The notes beneath the pieces were generated by a model that saw only the letters and a list, made by a program, of their open reading frames with translations, was not told the DNA's origin and ran no database searches. A stretch of 63,473 nt of DNA, counting the filler, from Octopus bimaculoides (lineage: Eukaryota), in the NCBI RefSeq assembly GCF_001194135.2. It is 7 parts of 7 records of this genome, joined end to end, with 100 filler letters (N's around TTAATTAATTAA, not from the genome) between each part and the next. Parts side by side here need not be neighbours in the genome. Positions count along the whole stretch, not along the records: positions 16,138 to 31,059 come from NC_068991.1; 6 more parts are not named here. One strand, written 5' to 3'. Of the stretch, positions 16,138 through 32,444 are shown piece by piece (the first letter of the stretch is position 1; every line of letters begins with the position of its first letter). Made by a program: the position numbers and the translations under genes.

Positions 16138-16357
16138 ATGTACAAGGCACTCATGCCAGTGCCACATAATAGCAAAAAAGGGTGCCACTTTAAAAGACCC
16201 AGCACACACTGTAAAGTGGTTGGCATTTGGAAGGGCATCCAGCCATAGAAACCAAGCCCAATTGGACTGGAACCTGGTGCAGCTCTGCAACTTGCTAGCT
16301 CCAGTCAAACCATCCAAAACATGCCAGCATGGAAAACAGATGTTAAAGGATGATGAT
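16138..16357 (+). mobile_element. Retroposon family C, 3' fragment
   Basis: GGAAGGGCATCCAGCC...GCATGGAAAACAGATGTTAAAGGATGATGAT. Confidence 0.75.
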
Positions 16358-16521
16358 ATATATATGTGTGTGTGTGAATGTGTATAAGGAGAGTGAGAGA
16401 GGAAAATGGTATATATAAATGATTGCATGTTTTTGTATAAATATTTCTATGTCTTTTTTTTTAATATAAATATAGTGAAAGGTTATTACTAATTGTACCC
16501 ATATTCTTATCATATTTCCAG

Positions 16522-16584
16522 CCATCACAGGGAAGTTACCCGCCTAGACCATCAAATCAAGGTTCCTCTCAGCACAACTCTTAT
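16522..16584 (+). CDS. Probable upstream low-complexity exon of the TRPT1-like gene
   Basis: catatttccag|CCA...TAT|gtatgt, 63 nt, phase 0-0. PSQGSYPPRPSNQGSSQHNSY. Confidence 0.55.
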
Positions 16585-16630
16585 GTATGTATATGTGTCA
16601 TTGTATTTATGGTTATGTGAACCCGTGTGG

Positions 16631-16663
<33 letters not shown>

Positions 16664-17059
16664 GCTCCACATACAGATATAGATGTGTATATATGTGTAA
16701 GTATATGTATGTTTATGTACGTATGTGTGTGTAAATGTATATATGTATATATATGTGTGTAAGTAAGTGTATGTATATATATGTATGTACGTGTGTGTGT
16801 GTGTGTGTATATATGGCCAAAAACAAATCAAGGTGAAAGGGGGGGGAAGGAGAAGGAAAAAAGGGGAGGAATACAGTTAGAAAATCAGGACTAAACTAAG
16901 ACAATTAAAGCTAAGGTTTCAGAATTGATAATATGGTAGAAGAGACTTAGAATTAGCTAGAGAAATGGAAGAATATTATCAGTGGGTTGGGAAATGTTAA
17001 AATGTATTCCAAATTTATACTTTAAAGCTATAACTCAAATAAAGTAGTTAATAGTGTGG

Positions 17060-18060
17060 GAAACGAAAGGGATTAAAATAATATATTATTAGCAAGATTT
17101 ACTTTTTAAAATATTTAAAGGTGCGAGAGTAACAATGTACACATAGAACCCTAAGGTCAGATCTACTGTTAATTAGATTAGGATTATCCTTAAGTTTAAA
17201 AATTTCATAAATTTCCATAGAGCACAGTCCACAGCTGTATCTACTATTTCTATAGGGTTGTGCTCTCCTGATGATTTCCCATTTAATGTTAAAATCGATG
17301 CCTTTTCCTTCAATTCCCAAATTTTATTAGATAATGATGTGCTATTGGCCTTATGTTTAAGTCAAAACGAAGAAAAATTATTGTATAATCGCTGTTTAAG
17401 ATTGATTGTGCAACCAACATAAATGTAATTATTAGTTGGAGTAGCTACTGTACATTTATAGACCACATTACGGGCTAAACAACGGCCAGATACTGGGCAG
17501 CAGGCCTTAATTCTACAATTGCAATCAAGGGGATTATTAGCTATATATATATTACTATGTTGATTGTTGGTACAAATATCTAAATTGGTTATATCAATAT
17601 TGTTGGTTGTATTACTGGATATGCAATTGATATTGTTAGAGCTAGGAAGATTTATCTCATCAACTATGTTAACAGTTGAAGTATTATGTTCATTAACATG
17701 TACATGATTATTGGTGTTATTAATTGTCTGGTAGTTATTTGTATTGCTATCAATACTAAGACAATTTTTATTTTCAAGGGTCCTAGCTAGTTCAATGTTC
17801 TTTTTATTCAACTTATTGATGATAGATCCTATATTGGGGAGAGTAGAGTATGAGATACAGATTGTGTGTTGAGAAAAGATTTTATAATATCTATGGTTAG
17901 GGTCGAAATTTTTTTGTAAGATATTCATAAATTTCTTATAGATGTTCGTAGATACTAAATAGTTGTAAGGGATGTTAAACCATATAGAATTTTTTTCTTT
18001 TAGATTTGTAATATGAAGGGGGTTTGTGGTTATCAAGTATTTGGGGTTATATTATCTATC
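17060..18060 (-). mobile_element. Penelope-like retroelement 3' part (GIY-YIG endonuclease), frameshifted
   Basis: ORF 17362-18036 has IWFNIPY...ISYSTLPNI...CNCRIKACCPVSGRCLARNVVYKC...YVGCT. ORF 17099-17320 has IKWEII...CGLCSME...LINSRSDL...CVH. Confidence 0.85.
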
Positions 18061-18403
18061 TTGTTATGTAAAGTAATTTTCCTACTCTTTTGGCCATTAT
18101 TATAATTTCTTAACCTAGGTATTTTATTAGTGTTAATATGATTATGTAGACATTTATCAGGTTGTATTTCATCTATAAGAAATTTATGGATATCTTACAA
18201 AAAAATTTTGACCCAAACCATATCTATAGACGTATATGTATATATATATATGTATGTGTATATAGGTATATATATATGTATGTGTGTATATGTAGATATA
18301 TATATGTATGTGTGTATATATATATGTATGTGTATATATATATGTATATATCTATGTGTATATATGTGTATATATATATATGTATATGTATGTATATGTA
18401 TAT

Positions 18404-19023
18404 AAGACCCGGCAAACCAAGTGAGACCATAACCCATGGCCTATGCCAGTGGTGTAACCAACCCACTTAGGTGTACCTTTCTTTCATTGGACACTTAACT
18501 CTTCTTGCGAAGACCTGTTGAGGCAAGTGAAATGGAAATCGAATTTGATGACAGCACCACATGACTGGCATCTGTGCCAGTGGAGCACTAAGAGCACCAT
18601 CCAAGTGTGATTGTTGCCAGGGCCACTGACTGGCCCTCGTGCCGGTGGCATGTGAAAAAGCACCATTCGAGCGTAATTGTTACCAGTGTCGCCTTACTGG
18701 CACTTGTGCCGGTGGTACGTGAAAAACAATATTCGAGTGACGGCGCTGCCAGTGCCGCTGGACTGGCTCCTGTGCAGGTGACATGTAAAAACACCATTTG
18801 AGCATGGCCATTGCCAGTACCGCCTGACTGGCCCTTGTGCCGATGGCACGTAAAAGCACCCACTACTCTCTCAGAGTGGTTGGCATTAGGAAGGGCATCT
18901 AACTGTAGAAACTCTGCCAGATCAGATTGGAGCCTGGTGCAGCCATCTGGCTCACCAGTCCCCAGTCAAACCGTCCAACCCATGCCAGCATGGAAAGCAG
19001 ACATTAAACGATGATGATGATGT
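18404..19023 (+). mobile_element. Retroposon family C, long copy with internal tandem subrepeats and (GAT)n tail
   Basis: Repeated GGCACGTAAAAAGCACCAT-type units, then GGAAGGGCATC...GCATGGAAAGCAGACATTAAACGATGATGATG. Confidence 0.85.
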
Positions 19024-19271
19024 ATATATATGAACATTATATATGTATATATCTAAGATAATAAATGCACAAACTAATTTCTGTGTCTCAGTGTGTCACA
19101 CCTAGACCCCCTCATTTACTATTCCATGATACTCCTACTATTCCTCATGATGGGGGTGAGAGTAACATTAGGCATAGAGATGGTGAGGGTGGTGGCGTCA
19201 TCAGACAGAGAGAGAGAAAGAAAAAGAGAGGGAGAGAAAGAGACAAAGAAATTTAAGGTGAATTGAATGTC

Positions 19272-19362
19272 ATCATCATCATCATCATCATCATCATCGT
19301 TTAACGTCCGCTTTCCATGCTAGCATGGGTTGGACGATTTGATTGAGGACTGGTGAAACCAG
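19272..19362 (-). mobile_element. Retroposon family C, 3' fragment
   Basis: (CAT)n followed by CGTTTAACGTCCGCTTTCCATGC. Confidence 0.8.
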
Positions 19363-19571
19363 AAAAGTAGTCGTGTTGATGGTGGCAGTAGGAGTAATAA
19401 TAAAAGACAGAAAGAGGAAGGTGATTTATTACTTTGTTTAACTATGTGTCTTTGACAGAAATTCCTGTCGCAAACATGTTAAACATTATCATTTAAAAAA
19501 GCCTTTTTTGCTTTCTTTAATATAGTGAAAGCTTATTACTAATTGTTCCTATATTCGCATTATATTTTCAG

Positions 19572-19628
19572 GCAGATCACCAGTCAGGATCATCAAATTT
19601 CTATGGTTCATCTCAGTATTACCCTCAA
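19572..19628 (+). CDS. Probable upstream low-complexity exon of the TRPT1-like gene
   Basis: cattatattttcag|GCA...CAA|gtacgt, 57 nt, phase 0-0. ADHQSGSSNFYGSSQYYPQ. Confidence 0.55.
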
Positions 19629-19879
19629 GTACGTATATGTATTTATGTTTTTTATCAGTCCATGATGTGTGGCAATATGTGTGTGTGTATGTATAGATGT
19701 GTGTGCATGTAGTGTTTGTGTGTGTGTATATATACACACACATATACATATACACACTCACAGGGTGATCAGACGAAATGTAGTCATATTGATTCTAATA
19801 GTATATCAAATTTAAATATGCTCAAATAAAGCTCAGAAAAGGTAGATTAAGATCATATATTTAACTTTCAATACATCCA

Positions 19880-20110
19880 CCTTTTCCAGAGACTATCTTC
19901 CAGAGTCTGGGAACAAATTGGGAGTGAATGGCACGAACAGTTTCTTTGGAGATTTCATCCTAGCATTTTCGCAAATAGTGCTCAAGAGCTCTGAGACTTG
20001 TGTGAAAATCAGCACAGGCTTTTCTCTCAAGGATAGGCCTTATGCCAAATTCCTGGGATGTTTTGGGGTTCTGCTATCTCAATGTTAATGAACCTCATGC
20101 ACATGGTAGA
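19880..20110 (-). mobile_element. maT/Tc1-mariner transposase C-terminal remnant (paralogous to 25741-25900)
   Basis: Near-identical to 25735-25885. Encodes a ...ILERK.CADFHTSLRALEH...DEISKETV...VPRLWK remnant. Confidence 0.7.
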
Positions 20111-20140
20111 TTATGGTATATTTCACAATATACATTAGTT

Positions 20141-20625
20141 TTAATATCTAATTGACCCTGCTTTAGCATCAATTACCGCTTTTATATGGTTAGGCATTGA
20201 ATCAACTAGTTTCTTACAGGTGCTAGGAGCAATTTTACTCCATTCTTCTCTCAACTTTTGGTACAAATGCTCTTTATTTTTAATTGTTGTGTTCCTGATA
20301 GCTTCACCAAGAGTTCCCCATAAGTGTTCGATCGGATTTAGATTGGGACTTTGAGCTGGACAGTGTGTGGGAACAATACCCTGTGTCTCAAACCATTGAT
20401 GAGTATTCTTTGCTGTATGACATAGAGCATTGTCCTGTTGAAGGATAACACTGTTTTTTGACACTCCTGGATGCAATTTAGCAATTGATGGCTCTAAAAT
20501 ATCTGATAACATAGAAGCATAGGTAGCTGAATTTATCCTTCCCTGACATAAAAATATTTCTCTGGTTCCTGTGGCTGACATGCAGGCCCACACCATGTTA
20601 GAACCACTCCCAGCTTCTTCCACTG
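20141..20625 (-). mobile_element. Tc1 (DD34E-type) transposase C-terminal half, open frame
   Basis: GSGSNMVWACMS...QQDNALCHT...AQSPNLNPIEHLW...EEWSKI...SMPNHIKAVIDAKAGSIRY. Confidence 0.9.
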
Positions 20626-21310
20626 TGTTCGTGTGGACTGTAGGATCATTGGGGTCTACAAAATGAGCACTGTGGTTCACTGTTGAATGGCCTTGCAAAG
20701 CATTATATGCCTTCCAGCAATCGGTTATAATCTTCATCCCTGGACAAGAACTAACACACATCTTAGCGTCCCACGTTGCATCATTCCAAGAACCCAGTTG
20801 CCCAGCTTATAATGACTTCTGTGATATTTGCGATGCATAAACTTTGATTCATCTATCTCAATGATGACATCCTGCCCACCAAGTTGGACAGGATTATCAA
20901 TGCACCACATGGCACAAATGTCCTGAAAGTAGTTATACCAATTGACTATTACTTCTGATCCAATCCCAACTTCTCTCATAACTACAGACTGCTTACAATC
21001 CATTTCAGCCCAGTAATAGATTAAAATGAGGAGCCATGCCAGTGATGTGTGGGAATCCACAAAAAAGAATCTTTTCTCAAACTTCGATGGCACCTACAAG
21101 TTCGACATCTCCACATTATGCCTTCGGAAGTTCTTTTCTTTGGTGTAAGGGTCATCAGGTTATTGCAACACTCAGCCAAATTTTTTATTAGCACCACAGA
21201 GGCAAGGAATTCTATGGTCGAATTCGAACTGTTCGCCATACCCTGAACCTCTCTAAGAATATATTTCTTTTGCATTAAGTTATCAATGGGTATTACAGAA
21301 TCCACTATGT
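20626..21310 (-). mobile_element. Merlin/IS1595-type (ISXO2-like) transposase, frameshifted and 3'-truncated
   Basis: Zn ribbon WRCRTCRC; IEIDESKFMHRKYHR...WVLG; ITDCWKAY...HSTVNHSAHFVDP...HTNTVE. Confidence 0.85.
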
Positions 21311-21724
21311 GGCATCAATTATCCATCCTGAAATGCAATACAGGCATGTAGGGGCTTTTCCTAGAATTTAAAAAGGAAGAAAAGCTGAAAACTACTGTTT
21401 ATATACGCAGAGGGTGGCTCAAACAGCATATACTTTTTTTTCCCGCGTTGGGAAGTTGAAACTGACCAATAACTGTGACTTGATGCTAAAGAAAAGAACT
21501 TGGTCACCAGACAATAACTACCATCTTGGTTAGTTCTGTTGACCAAGTTCTTATTGGTCAGTTTTTTCCCACTTCGGGAAGTTTCAACTTCAGGAAACTG
21601 GTAAGGGAGGTTGGATTTGACCTTGTACCATATGGAATGATCAACCAAAGAGTTCTGGTAGGGCACACCTTGTTATTAGGGTAATTATCTTGAAAAGTCC
21701 TAGACTTATTTTTATTACATATAA

Positions 21725-21830
21725 AGATTGGAGCCTGATGTAGCCATCTGGTTTCACCAGTCCTCAGTCAAATCGTCCAACCCATGCTAGCTTGGAAAGC
21801 GGACGTTAAACGACGACGATGATGATGATG
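21725..21830 (+). mobile_element. Retroposon family C, 3' fragment
   Basis: GATTGGAGCCTG...GGACGTTAAACGACGACGATGATG. Confidence 0.8.
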
Positions 21831-21899
21831 AAAGGGATATAAAGAACTGTTATCTCCCTTATGCTGTAAAATTACATTTTTCAATTTAGTGTTGTTATT

Positions 21900-22200
21900 C
21901 AAACAAAAATTTATATTATTACTGTTATAATGTGTTTTCATGTCCTGATTAATAGAGGCAGAATTAATGCCAATGGGGTTAAGATAGGTAATCTTTTCTT
22001 TATAGCCTGCTTTAAGTAAGGCAGAGTTATAAACTTCGCTTTTATCATTGAAGATATCATCATTAGCAGATAATCTAGAAAGTCTAAGTGGAATATTTCT
22101 AACTCAATTCCTTGTAATAGCCTTTGGATGATTACTGAAAGAGCTAATATATTTTGGAGTTGAGGGTTTATGGTATGAGAAATATGAATCATATAAGTTA
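21900..22200 (-). mobile_element. Second Penelope-like fragment (RT-endonuclease linker)
   Basis: Minus-strand frame YHKPSTPKYISSFSNHPKAIT...IPLRLSRLSANDDIFNDKSEVYNSALLKAGY matches the PLE SNHP...RISxLS...ALxxSGY region. Confidence 0.7.
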
Positions 22201-22641
22201 AGGGTAATATCCATCGTTCCCCTTCATCATATACGTGACAGTCACATTCAGTTAAAATGGCTTATTGATGTGTTTTGTTTCTCTTTTTTTTTCTCTGACA
22301 AAATGATTGCATTGTTTTACATCGTTTTTATTCCTTCTGGAATAATATCAATGCTTTCTTCAAATCATATGTTGGAAGTATAAATGATTTGAATAACACC
22401 TGCATTTGACCCCATTTCTTAATTTATCTATATATATGTATATATGTGTGTGTGTGTGTATATATATAAAAATAAAATGACCCCCAGACAAAAGGTCAAA
22501 ACTGTTTTATTTCAAATTTTTGTTCATTTTTACTGATGTTTGATAAGATGAGATTCATTGAAACTGATAGTATTTTCTTTATATAATTTTTAAAATCATT
22601 TTTATTAAATTCCATATGCCATAGCATATCTTTCTTATTGT

Positions 22642-23162
22642 CACACTGCCTTCTGCGCATGCATGCTAATAGTTAGTGACATTGTGATCACGTAATCAAA
22701 GTTTGAGCCTGATAGTGCCATTTTTCTTTCTGATTTTACAATGTAAGCATGGCCACTCCATTGTGCACCAAAGAAGAACAAAGAAGTGACCCAATTTTTG
22801 TGATCAGAAGGTGTGTCAGGTGTTGAAATTCATTGGAGTCTTCTACCACAATACAGGAACAGTGCATTACCGCATAGAAGTGTGTATGAGTGGATCGAGA
22901 AGTGTAAGAGGGAGGAGGTGCTTGTCAACCTTGACCACTGATGAGAAGATTCAGCAAGCTTGAGAGATGGTGATGGTGAACTTGTTCACTATTACCATCT
23001 CTCAGATCACTGCTCTTCGTTGTTTTTTGGTGCACATTGCTAGTGGAGCAGCCATGCTTACACTGTATGGCCAGAAAAAAAAATGGTGCTATCATGCTCA
23101 AACTTTGATCACGTGACCACAATACTACAAACTATAAGAATGCATGTGCAGAAGGCAGTGTG
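22642..23162. mobile_element. Mariner-derived foldback element with about 180-bp inverted arms
   Basis: 22642-~22810 is the reverse complement (about 80% by eye) of ~22990-23162. The core encodes a decayed mariner N-terminus, MATPLCTKEEQRS...HRSVYEWIEK. Confidence 0.7.
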
Positions 23163-23209
23163 GTTATGATAAAGATGGCAAAATTGCAGATAATTTTTGA
23201 CTTCCCCTC

Positions 23210-23279
<70 letters not shown>

Positions 23280-23380
23280 ATGTCTGTATATGTGTGTATG
23301 TCTGTATATATATATGTGTATGTGTATGTCTGTATATGTGTATATGTATGTATGTATATATATATATATATATATATATA

Positions 23381-24620
23381 GTAGTTCCCCGGTATTTGCG
23401 GGAGTTACATTTCTAGAGCACCTGCGAATATTGGACGTGGTCCTTAAAAATACCTATAAATGTCAAAATATCATGTAAAATATTATAAATATATATATAT
23501 ATAATATTTAATAATAATTTAATAAAATATAAAGTAAAATGTCCTGTTACTCATCAATAATGAATGATATTGATTTAAGACAATGATGACAAAATTAATG
23601 AAGGTACTGACTGCAGAGCAAAGATTTAAAGCTCTGTGGTTGAAGCTACTTCTTCATGTGTTGTGTCTTCGTGCAAGGCTTTCTTGGTGGGCTTGAGGAA
23701 CATTGTGATGAGAAGTTGCTGTTGTTGTTTATTCATGGTGGCGAGGAGAGTTTTATATGGCTGCATCGATGGCATTTTGGAGAGATCGGACCATATAGGG
23801 ATGCCATGCTTCCACCTTCCCTTGCAATTCTTTTGCTGCCCTTAAAAGGTCAGAAAGACATTCGATTGCCAGGCCCACCTCATCCTCTTCTTCCTCTCGA
23901 TTTGGCGCTTCCTCCTCTTCACTGGCAGACTTCGTTAACTCCAACAAATCTTTGTCTGTCAGGGTTTCAGAGTGGGCATCAATGAGGTCGTTGACCTCAT
24001 ATTGTGTGAAGTCGTCAAAATCTTCACCACTAAGTACCTTTGCCAGTTTCACTGCATTGTTGACAGCCTCGTGCTGGATATCTTAGGTGAGAAGCCCTTA
24101 TAGTCATAGACACATACTGGCCACACCTTTTTCCAGCATGCAATGAGGATTTCTTTTTCATGTGTTTAAGAGCAGATGGATGGCGGACATGCATGTTGCG
24201 ATTGTGACGTTATGCCAGTACTCCTTTAACTTGAAATTCTTGTCCGAATCCATTGCATCCACAAGGTGTTGGAGAGAGTTTCGAGTGTAAAGTGCCTTGA
24301 AAGCACGGATCACGCCTTGATCCATAGACTGGATGAGAGGGGTGGTGTTGGCAGGGAGGAACTCGACTTGGACTCCCTCGTGATTCAAATCCAAAGAGTG
24401 ACCACCAGCATTATCCTTAACAAGCAACACCTTGAATTCCATGCAAACATTTTGGAGGTATTCCTTGACTTGAGGGATGAAGCATCAGTGGAACCAATTC
24501 AAAGATAGACTTTTGGTAATTCAGGCCTTGCAGTTGTGCACCCAGTGGACAAGCAGCAGGTTTTTATTTCCATTTATGATGAATCAGGGGCTTTCCACTA
24601 GAGGGAAGCACTGGGTAGAT
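23381..24620 (-). mobile_element. pogo/Tigger-family transposon 3' half, decayed
   Basis: KVLLVKDNAGGH...FLPANTTPLIQSMDQGVIRAFKALY (DDE_1 domain) and an acidic C-terminus. Terminal GTAGTTCCCCGG abuts a TA run at 23381. Confidence 0.85.
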
Positions 24621-25358
24621 GTGATGTTTTTACACCTTTTTAACATTAGAGAACATTTTCTCTGCAGGAACTGCAATGAATTTTCCTTTAGTAGTTAAAA
24701 TATATCACAGACATATTTTAACAAACCTAAAGTTTATTTATTCTTCACCACTGCTTGGTGGTGTTGTTGATTTNNNNNNNNNNNNNNNNNNNNNNNNNNN
24801 NNNNNNNNNNNNNNNNNNNNNNNNNNNNNNNNNNNNNNNNNNNNNNNNNNNNNNNNNNNNNNNNNNNNNNNNATATATATATATATATACTATCTTCACG
24901 TATACTCTTATTATACTAGAGTAATACATACACACACACATGGTGAAGAAAAACACAAGTGAGCCATGTTGTCACAAAGGTGTTCATAATTTCACACTTG
25001 AAAGCAAAAGGGATATAGAGTCCTTCAGGAAAAAAGAGAATGGTGTAATAGAAATGAGTAAAGAGAGAAAAATAAAAAGACGTTAAGGTTCAGGTGGAAA
25101 TTCAGTTCTATGGGGAGGCGGTAAGAAGAGAGGGAAAGGTAAGGAGTTGTGTGCATATAGGGAAGAGTACTTGCATAAGAAGATGGGCACAGGAGTGGGT
25201 GGATAGTTTTTGGTGCAGAAGCAGCCATAACCAAGATGTATCTCACAACGTTCCACCACAAATGTCACCCAGTACCATACATATGCATGCATATTTAATG
25301 TGTGTATTTATGTATGTATGTGATGTGTGTGTGTGTATAGGGAGAGTGAAGGGAAAAT

Positions 25359-25393
<35 letters not shown>

Positions 25394-25481
25394 GTTTTTG
25401 TATAAATATATCTGTCTTTTTCAATATAGATATAGCGAAAGCTTATTATTAATTGTACCTATATTCTCATTATATTTCCAG

Positions 25482-25499
25482 ACCGAATACCGCTCTAAT
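25482..25499 (+). CDS. Candidate 18-nt microexon (TEYRSN) of the TRPT1-like gene
   Basis: cattatatttccag|ACCGAATACCGCTCTAAT|gttcat. Both flanks are homologous to those of the 19572 exon. The donor is weak. Confidence 0.35.
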
Positions 25500-25719
25500 G
25501 TTCATATATATATTTGTTTTATATGAGTCCATGATGTGTGGAGGTGTGTGTGCATGCGTGTATGTATAGGTGTGTGTGTGTGTGCATATATGTATGTGTG
25601 TGTGTGTGTGAATAAAGACACACACATATACACACTCACAGGGTGATCAGACAAAATGTAGACATATATATTCAAGTAGTATATGCTCAAGTGAAGCTCA
25701 GAAAATGTAGATTAAGATG

Positions 25720-27000
25720 ATAGAGACCATCTTCCAGAGTCTGGGAACAACTTGGGAGCAAGTGGCATGAACAGTTTCTTTGGAGATTTCATCCTAGCAT
25801 TTTCGCAAATGGTGCTCAAGAGCTCTGAGACTTGTGTGAAAATCAGCACAGGTTTTTCTCTCAAGGATAGACCATATGCCAAAGTCCATTGGATTCAAGT
25901 CACGTGAAGAGGTGCCCAGAATGCCTTGAAATTCTCTTGACATTTTTAGCCGTATGAGATGTTGCGCCATCTTATTGGAGAGTTACATATTCATCCCCTA
26001 TTGCTGCAGTAACCCAAGGGACTACTTTATCCTTTAATACGTCCAAATATACATGTCATGGAGCCTGGTGTTGCCATCCGGTTTCACCAGTCCTCAGTCA
26101 AGTCGTCCAACCCATGCTAGCATGGAAAGCGGACGTTAAACGATGATGATGATGACTTCAATNNNNNNNNNNNNNNNNNNNNNNNNNNNNNNNNNNNNNN
26201 NNNNNNNNNNNNNNNNNNNNNNNNNNNNNNNNNNNNNNNNNNNNNNNNNNNNNNNNNNNNNNNNNNNNNNNNNNNNNNNNNNNNNNNNNNNNNNNNNNNN
26301 NNNNNNNNNNNNNNNNNNNNNNNNNNNNNNNNNNNNNNNNNNNNNNNNNNNNNNNNNNNNNNNNNNNNNNNNNNNNNNNNNNNNNNNNNNNNNNNNNNNN
26401 NNNNNNNNNNNNNNNNNNNNNNNNNNNNNNNNNNNNNNNNNNNNNNNNNNNNNNNNNNNNNNNNNNNNNNNNNNNNNNNNNNNNNNNNNNNNNNNNNNNN
26501 NNNNNNNNNNNNNNNNNNNNNNNNNNNNNNNNNNNNNNNNNNNNNNNNNNNNNNNNNNNNNNNNNNNNNNNNNNNNNNNNNNNNNNNNNNNNNNNNNNNN
26601 NNNNNNNNNNNNNNNNNNNNNNNNNNNNNNNNNNNNNNNNNNNNNNNNNTCATGGAGCCTGGTGTTGCCATCCGGTTTCACCAGTCCTCAGTCAAGTCGT
26701 CCAACCCATGCTAGCATGGAAAGCGGACGTTAAACGATGATGATGATGACTTCAATAAAGATTAGAGGGGTTTTCATGCCATTTGAGGTCACACTCACCC
26801 ACACCATTATGGATGGAGGATTCTGCCATTGAAAGGATAGTATTTGTTAGACAGGAATATTCTCTTTACTTACTGCATATATACAATCATTTTGTGGATT
26901 GTGGCACGTTTGCACACTGAGTAACTTTTCATCTGTGTACAGTATTGGTGGCTGTGTGCCATTTCTCAGCTTTTACAGAAGAAGCTTTGCTCTTTGTGGC
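25720..27000 (-). mobile_element. maT (DD37D-like) transposase remnant interrupted by a SINE-C copy and an N-gap
   Basis: Minus strand ILYTDEK...HNPQND...PPSIMVW (26760-26950), LQ*DGATS (~25970), and SSRDLNPMDFGIWSILE (~25880). Confidence 0.75.
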
Positions 27001-27511
27001 TTCAGACAAAAGATGTGCTTTTGATATCTTTCAGTTCAATTTAACATAAACATTACTTCCTACGATGTGCTCAATTAACCTTATTCACTTGATTTCATAC
27101 TTCTTTGTATATCCATATCATTCATTTACTGCTTTCACTTTATTCAGCAAAAATAAGAGTTATTTATTATGTTCCAAGTTATATTAGTGGCAGTATTCTA
27201 TATCTACGAATTCCATTTGTCCTCTTAAACTTTCTTAGACACATCTAAGATTCTGAAAACAATCCTAGTTCACTTGTTTACGTTCATTGTAAGATGAATC
27301 CAAAACATTTAAATATTCTCCTCTCTCTGCTCTATGACGTATAAATTATTGAACAATATAACATTCTTTTTCATCTCTTGGAAAACCTTTGCACCAACAT
27401 ATATAGAACGTGATTACCGAAGTAAACTTTGGTAATAATATTAACTTAGTCTTTACAAGTAATTCTTACTCCTTCAACCCCTTCTTCTTGCCCCTTTTAT
27501 TTACATCTAAC

Positions 27512-27654
27512 TTGGCGTTAGGAAGGGCATCCAGCTGTAGAAACTCTGCCAAATCAGACTGGAGCCTGGTGTTGCCATCCGGTTTCACCAGTCCTCAGTC
27601 AAATCGTCCAACCCATGCTAGCATGGAAAGCGGACGTTAAACGATGATGATGAT
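27512..27654 (+). mobile_element. Retroposon family C, 3' fragment
   Basis: TTGGCGTTAGGAAGGGCATCC...AAACGATGATGATGA. Confidence 0.85.
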
Positions 27655-28709
27655 TAACAACATAATCTATCTCTGTAGATTAATAGACCACCAATTACCT
27701 TTATTAATTGTCAATCATATAATATCTTACTAATTAATATAAGCATAATTTNNNNNNNNNNNNNNNNNNNNNNNNNNNNNNNNNNNNNNNNNNNNNNNNN
27801 NNNNNNNNNNNNNNNNNNNNNNNNNNNNNNNNNNNNNNNNNNNNNNNNNNNNNNNNNNNNNNNNNNNNNNNNNNNNNNNNNNNNNNNNNNNNNNNNNNNN
27901 NNNNNNNNNNNNNNNNNNNNNNNNNNNNNNNNNNNNNNNNNNNNNNNNNNNNNNNNNNNNNNNNNNNNNNNNNNNNNNNNNNNNNNNNNNNNNNNNNNNN
28001 NNNNNNNNNNNNNNNNNNNNNNNNNNNNNNNNNNNNNNNNNNNNNNNNNNNNNNNNNNNNNNNNNNNNNNNNNNNNNNNNNNNNNNNNNNNNNNNNNNNN
28101 NNNNNNNNNNNNNNNNNNNNNNNNNNNNNNNNNNNNNNNNNNNNNNNNNNNNNNNNNNNNNNNNNNNNNNNNNNNNNNNNNNNNNNNNNNNNNNNNNNNN
28201 NNNNNNNNNNNNNNNNNNNNNNNNNNNNNNNNNNNNNNNNNNNNNNNNNNNNNNNNNNNNNNNNNNNNNNNNNNNNNNNNNNNNNNNNNNNNNNNNNNNN
28301 NNNNNNNNNNNNNNNNNNNNNNNNNNNNNNNNNNNNNNNNNNNNNNNNNNNNNNNNNNNNNNNNNNNNNNNNNNNNNNNNNNNNNNNNNNNNNNNNNNNN
28401 NNNNNNNNNNNNNNNNNNNNNNNNNNNNNNNNNNNNNNNNNNNNNNNNNNNNNNNNNNNNNNNNNNNNNNNNNNNNNNNNNNNNNNNNNNNNNNNNNNNN
28501 NNNNNNNNNNNNNNNNNNNNNNNNNNNNNNNNNNNNNNNNNNNNNNNNNNNNNNNNNNNNNNNNNNNNNNNNNNNNNNNNNNNNNNNNNNNNNNNNNNNN
28601 NNNNNNNNNNNNNNNNNNNNNNNNNNNNNNNNNNNNNNNNNNNNNNNNNNNNNNNNNNNNNNNNNNNNNNNNNNNNNNNNNNNNNNNNNNNNNNNNNNNN
28701 NNNNNNNNN

Positions 28710-28752
<43 letters not shown>

Positions 28753-28896
28753 TGATGTGTCTATGAATATTTCTTTTTTGCATGTGTATATATGTGTGTG
28801 TGTGAAAGTTTATACACACATACGTACACAGACACACACATATACATTGTTAAAACTAATTATTTCTGTTCTTATTCTTATATTTATTACCTACAG

Positions 28897-28983
28897 CAAT
28901 CATCCAGTCGAGGTAATATACAAAACAGCAACCAATATTACGCAAATGACCGGTCTTATACAAGGGGAACAAATATGGATGAA
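28897..28983 (+). CDS. Probable upstream low-complexity exon of the TRPT1-like gene
   Basis: ttattacctacag|CAA...GAA|gtaagt, 87 nt, phase 0-0. QSSSRGNIQNSNQYYANDRSYTRGTNMDE splices in frame to 30230. Confidence 0.65.
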
Positions 28984-29609
28984 GTAAGTACCATGTATTA
29001 AGATTAATCAATATGAAATGCCATTTATAAGTCAGTTTTCCACCATTGACCCATTAGTGTTTAAACTAGCCATATCCATCTCAAATATTCCAGCTGCTAT
29101 ATGTGAAAACTGGCCAGAACTGTCCTCTTACATTTATCCTACAATGTAATTTTAAAAATAAACAATCACATCATCAAAAGCCCAAAGCTATGAGATAATG
29201 CATAGTTAACTGAAAACATGAATAAATATGCATTACATTTGGCAGAATAATTTGTATGCTAAAGGGTTAAATGTAAGTCATAAGTATCTAATGATGCAGT
29301 AATTTGATATTAAACAACCTTTGCTTTAACGTTTGTCATTCTGCCTTAGCATTCTTCTTTTTTGTTCAATTCAAGGTCAGCTCAGGTGCACAGACTTGTA
29401 ATAAAGGTATTCTAGCCACTATCTCACATATTTAAACATAGTGTATCTCAAATGACTTTACTAAATGTATCCTTTGTGAGTGCTTTTTCATTATTTTTTT
29501 TCTGATTGTTTTTATAGAAAATGATTTTATAGTTTAGCTAGTTAATAAATCTCTATAAGAGATGAAAGCAGTAACTATACTGAGGAGTAATGATAATTAC
29601 CACTTGAGC

Positions 29610-29865
29610 AAGACTGGCTCCTGTGCAGGTGGCACGTAAAATACACCATTTCGAGCGTGACCGTTGCCAGTACCTCTTGACTGGCCTTTGTGCCGGTGGC
29701 ACGTAAGAGCACCCACTACACTCTCTGAGTGGTTGGCGTTAGGAAGGGCATCCAGCTGTAGAAACTCTGCCAAATCAGATTGGAGCCTGGTGTAGCCATC
29801 TGGTTCACCAATCCTCAGTCAAATCGTCCAACCCATGCAAGCATGGAAAGCGGACGTTAAACGAC

Positions 29866-29905
<40 letters not shown>
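29610..29905 (+). mobile_element. Retroposon family C copy with long (GAT)n tail
   Basis: Matches 18760-19023. Confidence 0.85.
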
Positions 29906-29907
<2 letters not shown>

Positions 29908-30229
29908 TATAATAATGATGAGTGTATTGTGTACAGTGCTCAGGTGCACTATACCTCATTCGTAAAGGAAAGGACAGAAAAGCGACAAAAAAAATCAAGT
30001 CAAAGAAAAACAGCTATAATTGTCAACAGTGTATAGTAAAAGAGCCATGGGAAAATGTATATAAAATGACAGAGGGATCAAGTCTGTGGTAAATAGCTTG
30101 ATGCCATTTCTTGTGCCAACATTTTTAGACTCTTAGAACAGACATTAATATGATCTACTTATTTTTTAAAAAGGGTAGAAAGCAGGATACACACAATACT
30201 ACTGGTTATATATATTTATTCATTTGCAG

Positions 30230-30311
30230 GTAGATCAACAATATCTTTCAAGGCAATTATCTTTAATCTTGCGGCACAAAGCACGAGATATGAAACTTCA
30301 TATAGATAGTG
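30230..30311 (+). CDS. TRPT1: tRNA 2'-phosphotransferase (Tpt1/KptA family) first domain exon
   Basis: tatttattcatttgcag|GTA...AGT G|gtaagt, 82 nt, phase 0 to 1. VDQQYLSRQLSLILRHKARDMKLHIDS aligns ungapped to the Tpt1 N-terminal motif LSKxLSxxLRHxAxxxGL (human DRDVQLSKALSYALRHGALKLGLPMGA, recalled from memory). Downstream exons are not visible before the linker at 31060. Confidence 0.75.
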
Positions 30312-30579
30312 GTAAGTTTAAATTCTTTATGACCAACAATAAAGTCTAATTTGTTAGTAGACTAATAGTTGAATTTATAGAAATACAACATATTTCCCTG
30401 AGCTGAAGGTTGTGTGTATGTATATATATATATATATATATATACATGTGTATAAATACATATGTATGTACATACATATGCATGTGTGTATGTAGGTATG
30501 AAGGTGTGAAAATGTGGGGATGGGAATTGGTCAGTACTGGTGTGTGCGTGATGGTATGAATATATAATTAAGAGAAAAG

Positions 30580-30688
30580 AACCAAAGTTCATGAATTCAT
30601 CCATGAAAATCCATAGTCACATATAGAAAAAATTAATATGTACATACACGATAAATAAGTATAATAAAATACAAAGTAAAAATCATAA

Positions 30689-30720
<32 letters not shown>

Positions 30721-30872
30721 TTTATTAATAATATTATTTTATGAATAATTATTAATAATATTATTTTATGATTTTTACTTTGTATTTTATTATACTTATT
30801 TATCGTGTATTTACTTATTAATTTTTTCTATATATGACTGGATTTTCATAGATGAATTCATGAACTTTGGTT
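30580..30872. repeat. Near-perfect inverted repeat (about 115-bp arms, AAT/ATT spacer)
   Basis: AACCAAAGTTCATGAATTCATC... at 30580 and ...GATGAATTCATGAACTTTGGTT ending at 30872. Confidence 0.9.
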
Positions 30873-32444
30873 ATATTATATACTATGAAACTTCATTTAA
30901 TTTTTAATTTTTGATAAATTAAATTTAATTGAGTTTTTACCTGTAAATTTGGATTTTATCCCTGATATTATTATCATTATATATTTATATGTATAAATAT
31001 ATAGAATGTTCTCTATGTGGCTCGTGTGTTCTCGTCTACGTTTGTTTGCAATGTCCTGTNNNNNNNNNNNNNNNNNNNNNNNNNNNNNNNNNNNNNNNNN
31101 NNNTTAATTAATTAANNNNNNNNNNNNNNNNNNNNNNNNNNNNNNNNNNNNNNNNNNNNTATATGCAAACATACGTAGTTACAGATATACACATACATGT
31201 CTATGTGTGAGTGTGTGTAATATGTGTGGGAGGGGTGGTGAGAGTGTTGTAGCAGTGAGTATTGAAGTCAGTCCCGGTTAACCATATATTCAAAAGTTTG
31301 ACCCACACCTTTGGCCTAGGTAAGTGGCTTGGGTCATAGCTTCAGACCGTTCTAAGACTTGCGAATGAAATTGGTATATCATCTTATTTTCCTGTCTATA
31401 ACTATCTGAAATGATGCACATATCTGAGGAAAACTCAGTCAATTACATTATAATTCAATGATTAGGCCTTTGAATTAGTCGAATACCAGCCGGGACAGTT
31501 ATTATTGGAACTCACAGATTTAATTTTCTTGCCATCCGAAACCTGAAATCCCCCTTTAGTCTAAATGATTAATGAAATCTACAAACATATACCACCGTGT
31601 TTCTCTCGCGTGAATATTCTAGAAATAGACAAGATGCAATTTCCAGAACACATGTTGGACCCTTATATAAATCCCTATAAAAGTATATTTGTCGAGCAGC
31701 GATAAGTATCATATTTGATGGCATAAAAATGCACAAGCGTATTTAACGGACCACAATTTTATCAGCGCAATAAACAATTTTAGTTCATTAAAGAATGTAT
31801 ACTGGGTCAACTTCATATGGAAGGACCCCAGGTGAATTTTGAGACTCTTTAAAAACAAAAAGACAGAATCATGTCTTATATGCCATCAAATACAGTAATA
31901 ATGTATTTGCATCTATAAGTATGCATTTCCTATATTTTTGTCATTGTTTAACTCTTTAACTTGTTTCATATCGACAGCAGCGGTCATGCTGGGGCACTAT
32001 AAAATTTCTTTTTTCTTTTCTTAGAAATTATGTAACGAACAAAATTTATTTTTTCCCGAGAAGAACAGCATACGCAAGCGCACACATACTCTTGCGCATA
32101 CACATCCCCACTGTTGCTACTTGACAGGGATTGATTATTAAAAAAATCCTTATTCTCTTTTTTATTCAATTATTAATATTACATAATTATCCATTGAGTG
32201 TCGGATTTCTGTCACCATAATACATATTCTCGTGCCAGAAATTGAAAGGCCTTGTAATTTATGTGTGTTCGTATTCGTATAACAAATTACAGCATATATC
32301 GTGAACATGAAAATTTTAAATGAAAGAACAAAATGTAATTTCATACAACATCCGAGGACTTTCTCTATAGTTCTGAACCCAATAAAAATGTTGAGTGATA
32401 GAATGTAAAGGGTGAAAGGTTAATTTCTCGCAGTATTTACTACC

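Follow-up and report, generated by a model that had tools for sequence, protein, structure and literature searches.

Does an octopus RNA-modifying enzyme of the TRPT1/Tpt1 type really carry a long polar head, and how is the length of that head set? The question is raised by a 63,473-nucleotide stretch of Octopus bimaculoides DNA (the window), in which the part derived from NC_068991.1 (positions 16138-31059, hereafter the piece, with three gaps of N inside it) was analysed. A sequence-only reading had proposed that a row of small, frame-neutral exons adds a Ser/Gln/Asn/Tyr/Gly-rich extension to a Tpt1/KptA domain, and that splicing could tune its length. The mRNA bears out a Tpt1-type enzyme with a long, polar and Tyr-rich extension at its N-terminus. 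Moreover, the first exon of the tail found in the piece is joined to its own start in most RNA runs, and the reading favoured here is that this reflects tandem copies of that exon.

Exon chain and enzyme domain

RNA contigs and raw reads from public runs, coded by X-numbers and mostly of the sequenced organism, were examined exon by exon, and links between separate exons were read from contig or read sequence continuing past each exon end. All five exon peptides proposed from the DNA were found where they had been placed, on the + strand, with a pyrimidine-rich tract and AG before and GT after each of them (lengths in nucleotides, nt):

16522-16584, + strand: E1, 63 nt, phase 0-0, encoding PSQGSYPPRPSNQGSSQHNSY, with AG before and GT after; RNA links the upstream exon to E1 and E1 to E2
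19572-19628, + strand: E2, 57 nt, phase 0-0, encoding ADHQSGSSNFYGSSQYYPQ; in RNA, flanked by the E1 end and the E4 start
25482-25499, + strand: E3 (TEYRSN), 18 nt, a decayed cassette copy not used as an exon
28897-28983, + strand: E4, 87 nt, phase 0-0, encoding QSSSRGNIQNSNQYYANDRSYTRGTNMDE; the RNA upstream of E4 is the E2 end
30230-30311, + strand: E5, 82 nt, encoding VDQQYLSRQLSLILRHKARDMKLHIDS and the initial base of a Gly codon; opens the Tpt1/KptA domain

Three junctions within the piece are confirmed by RNA. The E1-E2 junction appears in every RNA run of the sequenced organism examined at E1, E2 and E4 are joined directly in contigs that read into the partner exon from both sides, and the junction 28983 -> 30230 (E4-E5, GT..AG) was found in all four RNA runs. 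The whole chain E1-E2-E4-E5, followed by an exon outside the piece, is present in RNA contigs of more than eight public runs. The upstream exons are thus spliced in frame onto 30230, as had been claimed, and, counting a single E1, a tail of 74 or more residues rich in Ser, Gln, Asn, Tyr and Gly precedes the enzyme domain. Two details of the sequence-only reading have to be corrected. TEYRSN, which it took as an exon, occurs in no RNA contig, and no branch was seen at the E2 end. E5, which it closed at 30310, ends at 30311 in phase 1, as placed by the donor G/GTAAGT, the only canonical one there. Frame neutrality holds for E1, E2 and E4, whose lengths (63, 57 and 87 nt) are all multiples of 3. 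As for the tuning of length by exon skipping, no skipping of E2 or E4 was found in contigs or in read sequence past the exon ends; length variation appears in another form, as a variable reiteration of E1, treated below.

No upstream or downstream exons were found when they were sought inside the piece. RNA continues before E1 with ...AGTTTTCCATATCAAAGAAAAATGAAACCAAATTGG and beyond E5 with GTGGATTTGTGGCTGTTAATGAAATACTTCAT, both of them absent from the piece. A short first exon outside the piece, seen in RNA only, reads ...AAAATGAAACCAAATTGG and gives MKPNW (in frame, SFPYQRK-MKPNW), leading to the joined product MKPNW-PSQGSYPPRPSNQGSSQHNSY-ADHQSGSSNFYGSSQYYPQ-QSSSRGNIQNSNQYYANDRSYTRGTNMDE-VDQQYLSRQLSLILRHKARDMKLHIDSGGFVAVNEILH... 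The earlier placing of the start codon and catalytic exons outside the segment agrees with a likely ATG in the RNA-only upstream exon and with the remainder of the domain lying beyond the piece.

The three gaps of N (24774-24872, 26163-26649 and 27752-28709) do not disturb this chain. No reading frame crosses them, since all three sit in the E2-to-E4 intron, which is spliced out as one unit. A constitutive exon hidden in a gap was considered and ruled out, as RNA contigs go from E2 to E4 directly and without branching.

The identity of the enzyme was examined with the 38 residues from E5 onward (E5 and the next 11 residues). This query matches PF01885 (Tpt1/KptA) over 35 residues, at profile positions 4-38 of 177, scoring 38.7 bits where the cut-off is 26 (E 1.4e-9), and the E5 segment can be aligned with residues 5-45 of solved Tpt1 chains, LRH (ILRHK here) being conserved, so that the claim of a last exon opening the Tpt1/KptA domain stands. 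We take LRH to be the first Arg-His of the catalytic Arg-His-Arg-Arg tetrad; the rest of the domain, including the other two Arg of the tetrad, would be encoded in exons outside the piece. The shortness of the visible domain, just 35 residues, weighs against the assignment. For the part visible, membership is well supported by the profile match and the alignment, indicating that an animal TRPT1/Tpt1-type gene has its 5' coding part in the piece, and gene identity together with the exon chain can be held with high confidence.

Tpt1 enzymes transfer a 2'-phosphate to NAD+ and ADP-ribosylate 5'-phosphate ends (PMC6333775, PMC6182162, PMC10415124). Animal tRNA splicing proceeds without need for TRPT1, leaving its cellular role unclear, and a link to the ADP-ribosylation of RNA and DNA ends has recently been made (PMC9458441, PMC10415124). 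A protein search with the joined peptide returned no relative, in collections that appear to lack the octopus lineage. As to whether the extension is lineage-specific, the comparison covered one near-identical relative.

Coding status and composition of the tail

The ATG of MKPNW, which lies upstream of E1 and in frame with it and has an A at -3, is the likely start codon; the 12 codons visible before E1 contain no stop. A point against this placing is that in one run a contig extends 1.5 kb upstream of E1, and the true start codon could, given this contig, lie further 5'; in another run the upstream contig stops 36 nt before E1.

Taking into account that a Met stands three codons before E5, and that Tpt1 proteins normally begin a few residues ahead of their first helix, the Ser/Gln/Tyr-rich exons might alternatively be a 5' untranslated region, translation starting at the ATG late in E4 (...TNMDE) to give a short-headed Tpt1 beginning MDEVDQQYL. 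The frame of the domain is open over E1, E2 and E4, something that 3% of random 207-nt intronic windows show in a given frame; the +1 frame of these three exons is likewise stop-free, which agrees with a non-coding leader and makes the open frame alone weak evidence of coding. Against this alternative, scanning ribosomes would meet the upstream in-frame ATG first, with its A at -3 and no stop in between. Furthermore, every tail exon, like the E1 repeat unit, has a length divisible by 3, the 6-nt difference in length between E1 and E2 keeps the frame, and a strong three-base periodicity is observed, with T making up 4% of codon position 2 as opposed to 32% and 33% of positions 1 and 3. E1 is also identical in a sister organism. 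An untranslated tail is thus possible but disfavoured, and we consider it quite improbable.

Regarding its composition, the tail with one E1 consists of Ser, Gln, Asn, Tyr and Gly to 65% (68% with four copies of E1). Gln and Asn together account for 24%, there are 8 Tyr (11%), and charged and hydrophobic residues amount to 12% and 9.5%, respectively; between one and four copies of E1, the charged fraction ranges over 9-12% and the hydrophobic one over 5-10%. The tail, to which E1, E2 or E4 would contribute peptides such as GNIQNSNQYYANDR, therefore shows the polar uncharged bias of a prion-like or FET-type low-complexity domain. No strict [G/S]Y[G/S] triplets were found in it, its Tyr residues occurring as SYP, SYA, FYG, QYYP, QYYA and SYT. 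It is a polar Tyr-rich low-complexity sequence and not a FUS-type repeat. Composition suggests that the tail may be prion-like or condensate-forming and, together with general knowledge, that it is probably intrinsically disordered.

On these grounds, it can tentatively be proposed that the tail acts as a multivalent Tyr-based interaction module, which would concentrate or target the enzyme, in condensates or on partner proteins, and would not alter the chemistry of the catalytic domain. That such a function is a proposal drawn from sequence counts against the wider account, and we regard it as rather doubtful.

Cassette duplication and the E1-to-E1 junction

The introns preceding E1, E2 and E3 end in closely related sequence, recognised as one repeat family (D13, 79-82%), by blastn (84-90%) and by alignment:

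16435-16521, + strand: cassette module, 3' intron end before E1
19485-19571, + strand: cassette module before E2
25395-25481, + strand: cassette module before E3

Their last 75-90 nt are 79-90% identical. E1 and E2 can be aligned across exon and flanks (72.5% over 131 nt), and E2 and E3 also share sequence on their 3' side. E3 has flanks that match those of E1 and E2 at 84-90% identity, while about 41 nt have been lost from within its exon body and GTTCAT, a weak donor, follows it. Successive copies begin 3.05 kb and 5.9 kb apart, and a fourth cassette sought near 22500 was not found. E1, E2 and the dead copy E3 are tandem duplicates of one cassette formed by an exon and its intron ends.

This background is relevant to the most striking feature of the transcripts. 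Most RNA runs contain a junction that leads from the end of E1 back to its start, in frame, and that would repeat a unit of 21 residues. The joint is seen as a 60-nt junction contig (the first 30 nt being the E1 end and the last 30 nt the E1 start) or as an equivalent 93-nt loop contig in X14, X7, X5, X16, X18, X20 and X37, and in X36, a run of the sister organism; the junction is exact and canonical in these eight runs, which belong to six studies and two organisms. Depths for the entry into E1, the loop (E1-E1), the exit (E1-E2) and the E1 body were as follows:

X14: entry 104.5, loop 1366.7, exit 515.9, E1 body 1874.2
X7: entry 96.9, loop 344.3, exit 135.5, E1 body 439.1
X5: entry 80, loop 189, exit 59.8, E1 body 246.1
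X20: entry 32.9, loop 47.3, exit 111.5, E1 body 157.4

In these four runs the depth of the body equals that of loop and exit together. X16 and X18 contain loop and exit and lack the entry contig, and X37 has a loop of 6500 and an exit of 2800. The ratio of loop to exit is 2.3-3.9 in most runs, around 0.4-0.5 in X20 and X18, and zero in X19. Raw paired reads (X49 and X50) gave 416 and 389 counts for 16584 -> 16522 versus 161 and 117 E1-to-E2 reads. About half of these E1-to-E2 reads reach past the E1 start, and the upstream exon is not among the overhanging ends listed (down to 3 reads), indicating that the last E1 is mostly preceded by a further E1.

It is proposed that the genome would carry several identical E1 cassettes, collapsed or cut off in this short, gap-ridden, Illumina-type piece, and that E1 would be present in the mRNAs as (E1)n, n being roughly 1 to 5. 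The number of 21-residue units would then vary and the tail would measure roughly 74 to 160 residues, differing between samples through splicing or through differences in copy number. This tandem arrangement is favoured, with somewhat better than even confidence, because the locus demonstrably duplicates the E1 cassette, because the piece begins just 384 nt before E1, and because the exon preceding the last E1 is mostly E1 in raw reads. Several observations weigh against it. X19 shows a single unbranched path with one E1 at depth 100, which fits a circular RNA too. X36, from a near-identical sister organism in which E5 is present too, shows a closed 63-nt cycle with neither entry nor exit. No variant letters at or above 5% appear among the presumed E1 copies in raw reads, which obliges a tandem array to consist of identical copies. 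In X49 and X50, entry junctions are greatly outnumbered by exit junctions; for a linear array to produce this, a very short first exon and poor sampling of 5' ends would be needed. Two reads of X49/X50 join E1 to a 37-nt upstream exon and this again to E1, with the frame shifted into a stop, and a few short adapter-bearing inserts have 16542 as their first position and 16541 as their last; such reads and inserts are either chimeras or traces of circular molecules. Lastly, in the DNA runs X1, X2, X25, X28 and X30, no contig was placed on 16400-16610, though the run index lists all sampled words of this stretch for them.

Part of this evidence is what would be expected if the joint were a back-splice, that is, a 63-nt single-exon circular RNA that the reverse transcriptase copies in repeated rounds, beside a linear mRNA with one E1. 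The joint runs from the E1 donor to the acceptor of the same exon, its abundance compared with the linear junction ranges from 0 to 3.9 across runs, the isolated cycle of X36 is such a molecule in appearance, inserts running from 16542 to 16541 are those that a once-cut circle would yield, and the two reads through the upstream exon resemble an alternative back-splice. Nevertheless, exonic circles are usually far larger than 63 nt, which makes E1 a very small exon for back-splicing. The E1-to-E2 reads that extend beyond the E1 start without the upstream exon imply E1-E1-E2 molecules, and the cassette duplication at the locus speaks for a linear origin. Complementary repeats on either side of E1 are absent from what can be seen of its flanks: inverted pairs linking 16138-16521 (the 384 nt of upstream flank visible) with 16585-19571 were sought and none was found. 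In addition, a depth several-fold that of the linear mRNA in many independent libraries is at odds with the generally low level reported for circular RNAs in octopus (PMC9699675). A circle is, for these reasons, considered unlikely. Exon repetition might also arise without genomic duplication, by trans-splicing between two pre-mRNAs of the same gene or by template switching during library preparation. The low-level chimeric raw reads (2 reads each) are in line with this. The E1-E1 joint, by contrast, lies exactly at canonical splice sites, keeps the frame, and recurs in the eight runs (six studies, two organisms) with a depth exceeding that of the linear junction; template switching attains neither such levels nor such precision. 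This last explanation is given very little credence.

Tandem E1 copies are accordingly kept as the preferred reading, and the account taken as a whole, from gene identity and exon chain through the copies to the function of the tail, is judged reasonably probable. If it is true, a disordered Tyr-rich head of variable length suggests an enzyme targeted to particular assemblies or partners in the octopus lineage, and the tail would give a handle on where TRPT1 acts. The locus shows a domain, predicted to be disordered, built and resized by duplicating a small exon cassette, and, should the number of repeats be set by splicing or be specific to individuals, it would offer a natural length series in which to study the effects of tail length. 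If the E1-E1 joint were a circle instead, it would be among the smallest exonic circles, several-fold above its linear host mRNA and conserved in a sister species, with an endless stop-free frame (63 nt being 21 codons), and so tiny a circular RNA would be interesting in its own right.

Other features of the piece and comparison with known systems

The introns are packed with copies of a short interspersed nuclear element (SINE) and with transposase remnants, while a search of the piece against Rfam gave no match. The features found around the exons are:

16220-16357, 18628-19030, 21726-21832, 26056-26162, 27512-27663 and 29612-29883, in introns: SINE-like copies
17099-18227, - strand: Asn-rich open reading frame (ORF) of 224 residues, with a weak, below-threshold GIY-YIG match at its C-terminus
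20141-21305, - strand: broken Tc1-like transposase, DDE_3 with 55.6 bits in an ORF of 206 residues
23753-24442, - strand: DDE_1-type (pogo/Tigger-like) transposase remnant, 44.9 bits, adjoining the 99-N gap
26163-26649, no strand: assembly gap, an artefact, with the 107 nt on its left (26056-26162) equal to the 107 nt on its right (26650-26756); repeat family D5

The SINE-like element has at least seven intronic copies, 75-100% alike, and at the copy spanning 29608-29919 the depth of RNA contigs is as high as hundreds of thousands, which reveals a family massively represented in transcriptomes. The best database relatives of the Tc1-like ORF are distant transposases, 42-46% identical and without cephalopod names among them, and the ORFs that adjoin it have no Pfam match. 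At the Asn-rich ORF there is a 58-nt inverted repeat (17887-17944 versus 18170-18227, 91% complementary), and the two together may be another mobile-element remnant. The gap of 487 N at 26163-26649 is an unmerged assembly overlap, given that its flanking blocks of 107 nt are identical; the other two gaps adjoin (TA)n runs. Within the E4-to-E5 intron, a block of about 50 nt (29140-29191) has an RNA depth of approximately 280-540 in all four runs, independent of the depth of the gene, and was not seen joined to E4 or E5 in RNA; it is probably a dispersed repeat.

When compared with known TRPT1/Tpt1/KptA enzymes, such as human TRPT1 and yeast Tpt1, the octopus protein is alike in the first helix and strand of the domain and in LRH. 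In solved Tpt1 chains, however, the matched segment starts at residues 4-25, whereas here it starts at residue 78 or later, preceded by a low-complexity tail made from separate duplicated exons; the catalytic part of the octopus gene lies outside the piece. No description of a Tpt1 with such a tail was found in a literature search that was not exhaustive.

The FET proteins (FUS, EWS and TAF15) share with the octopus tail a polar, Tyr-studded and low-charge makeup, the tail having 65-68% of Ser/Gln/Asn/Tyr/Gly and about 10% of Tyr. The low-complexity domains of these proteins have around 200 residues or more. The octopus tail is much shorter (74-160 residues), lacks strict [G/S]Y[G/S] triplets, is richer in Asn and Pro, and is attached to an enzyme rather than to RNA-recognition motif (RRM) and Arg-Gly-Gly (RGG) modules. 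Another lead, drawn from motif style and not from homology, is given by annexins A7 and A11, whose N-terminal tails are rich in Gly, Tyr and Pro. The octopus motifs GSYPP and QYYPQ are reminiscent of them, and a disordered head before a folded core would be common to both, although the core domain differs.

Regarding the origin of the tail, the locus resembles the tandem exon duplication arrays already described (PMC9013439), in which paralogous exons stand in a row with paralogous intron ends. In contrast to those arrays, the octopus copies are not mutually exclusive, since E1 and E2 are both included in the mRNA, and E1 seems to be additively reiterated, lengthening the repeat domain.

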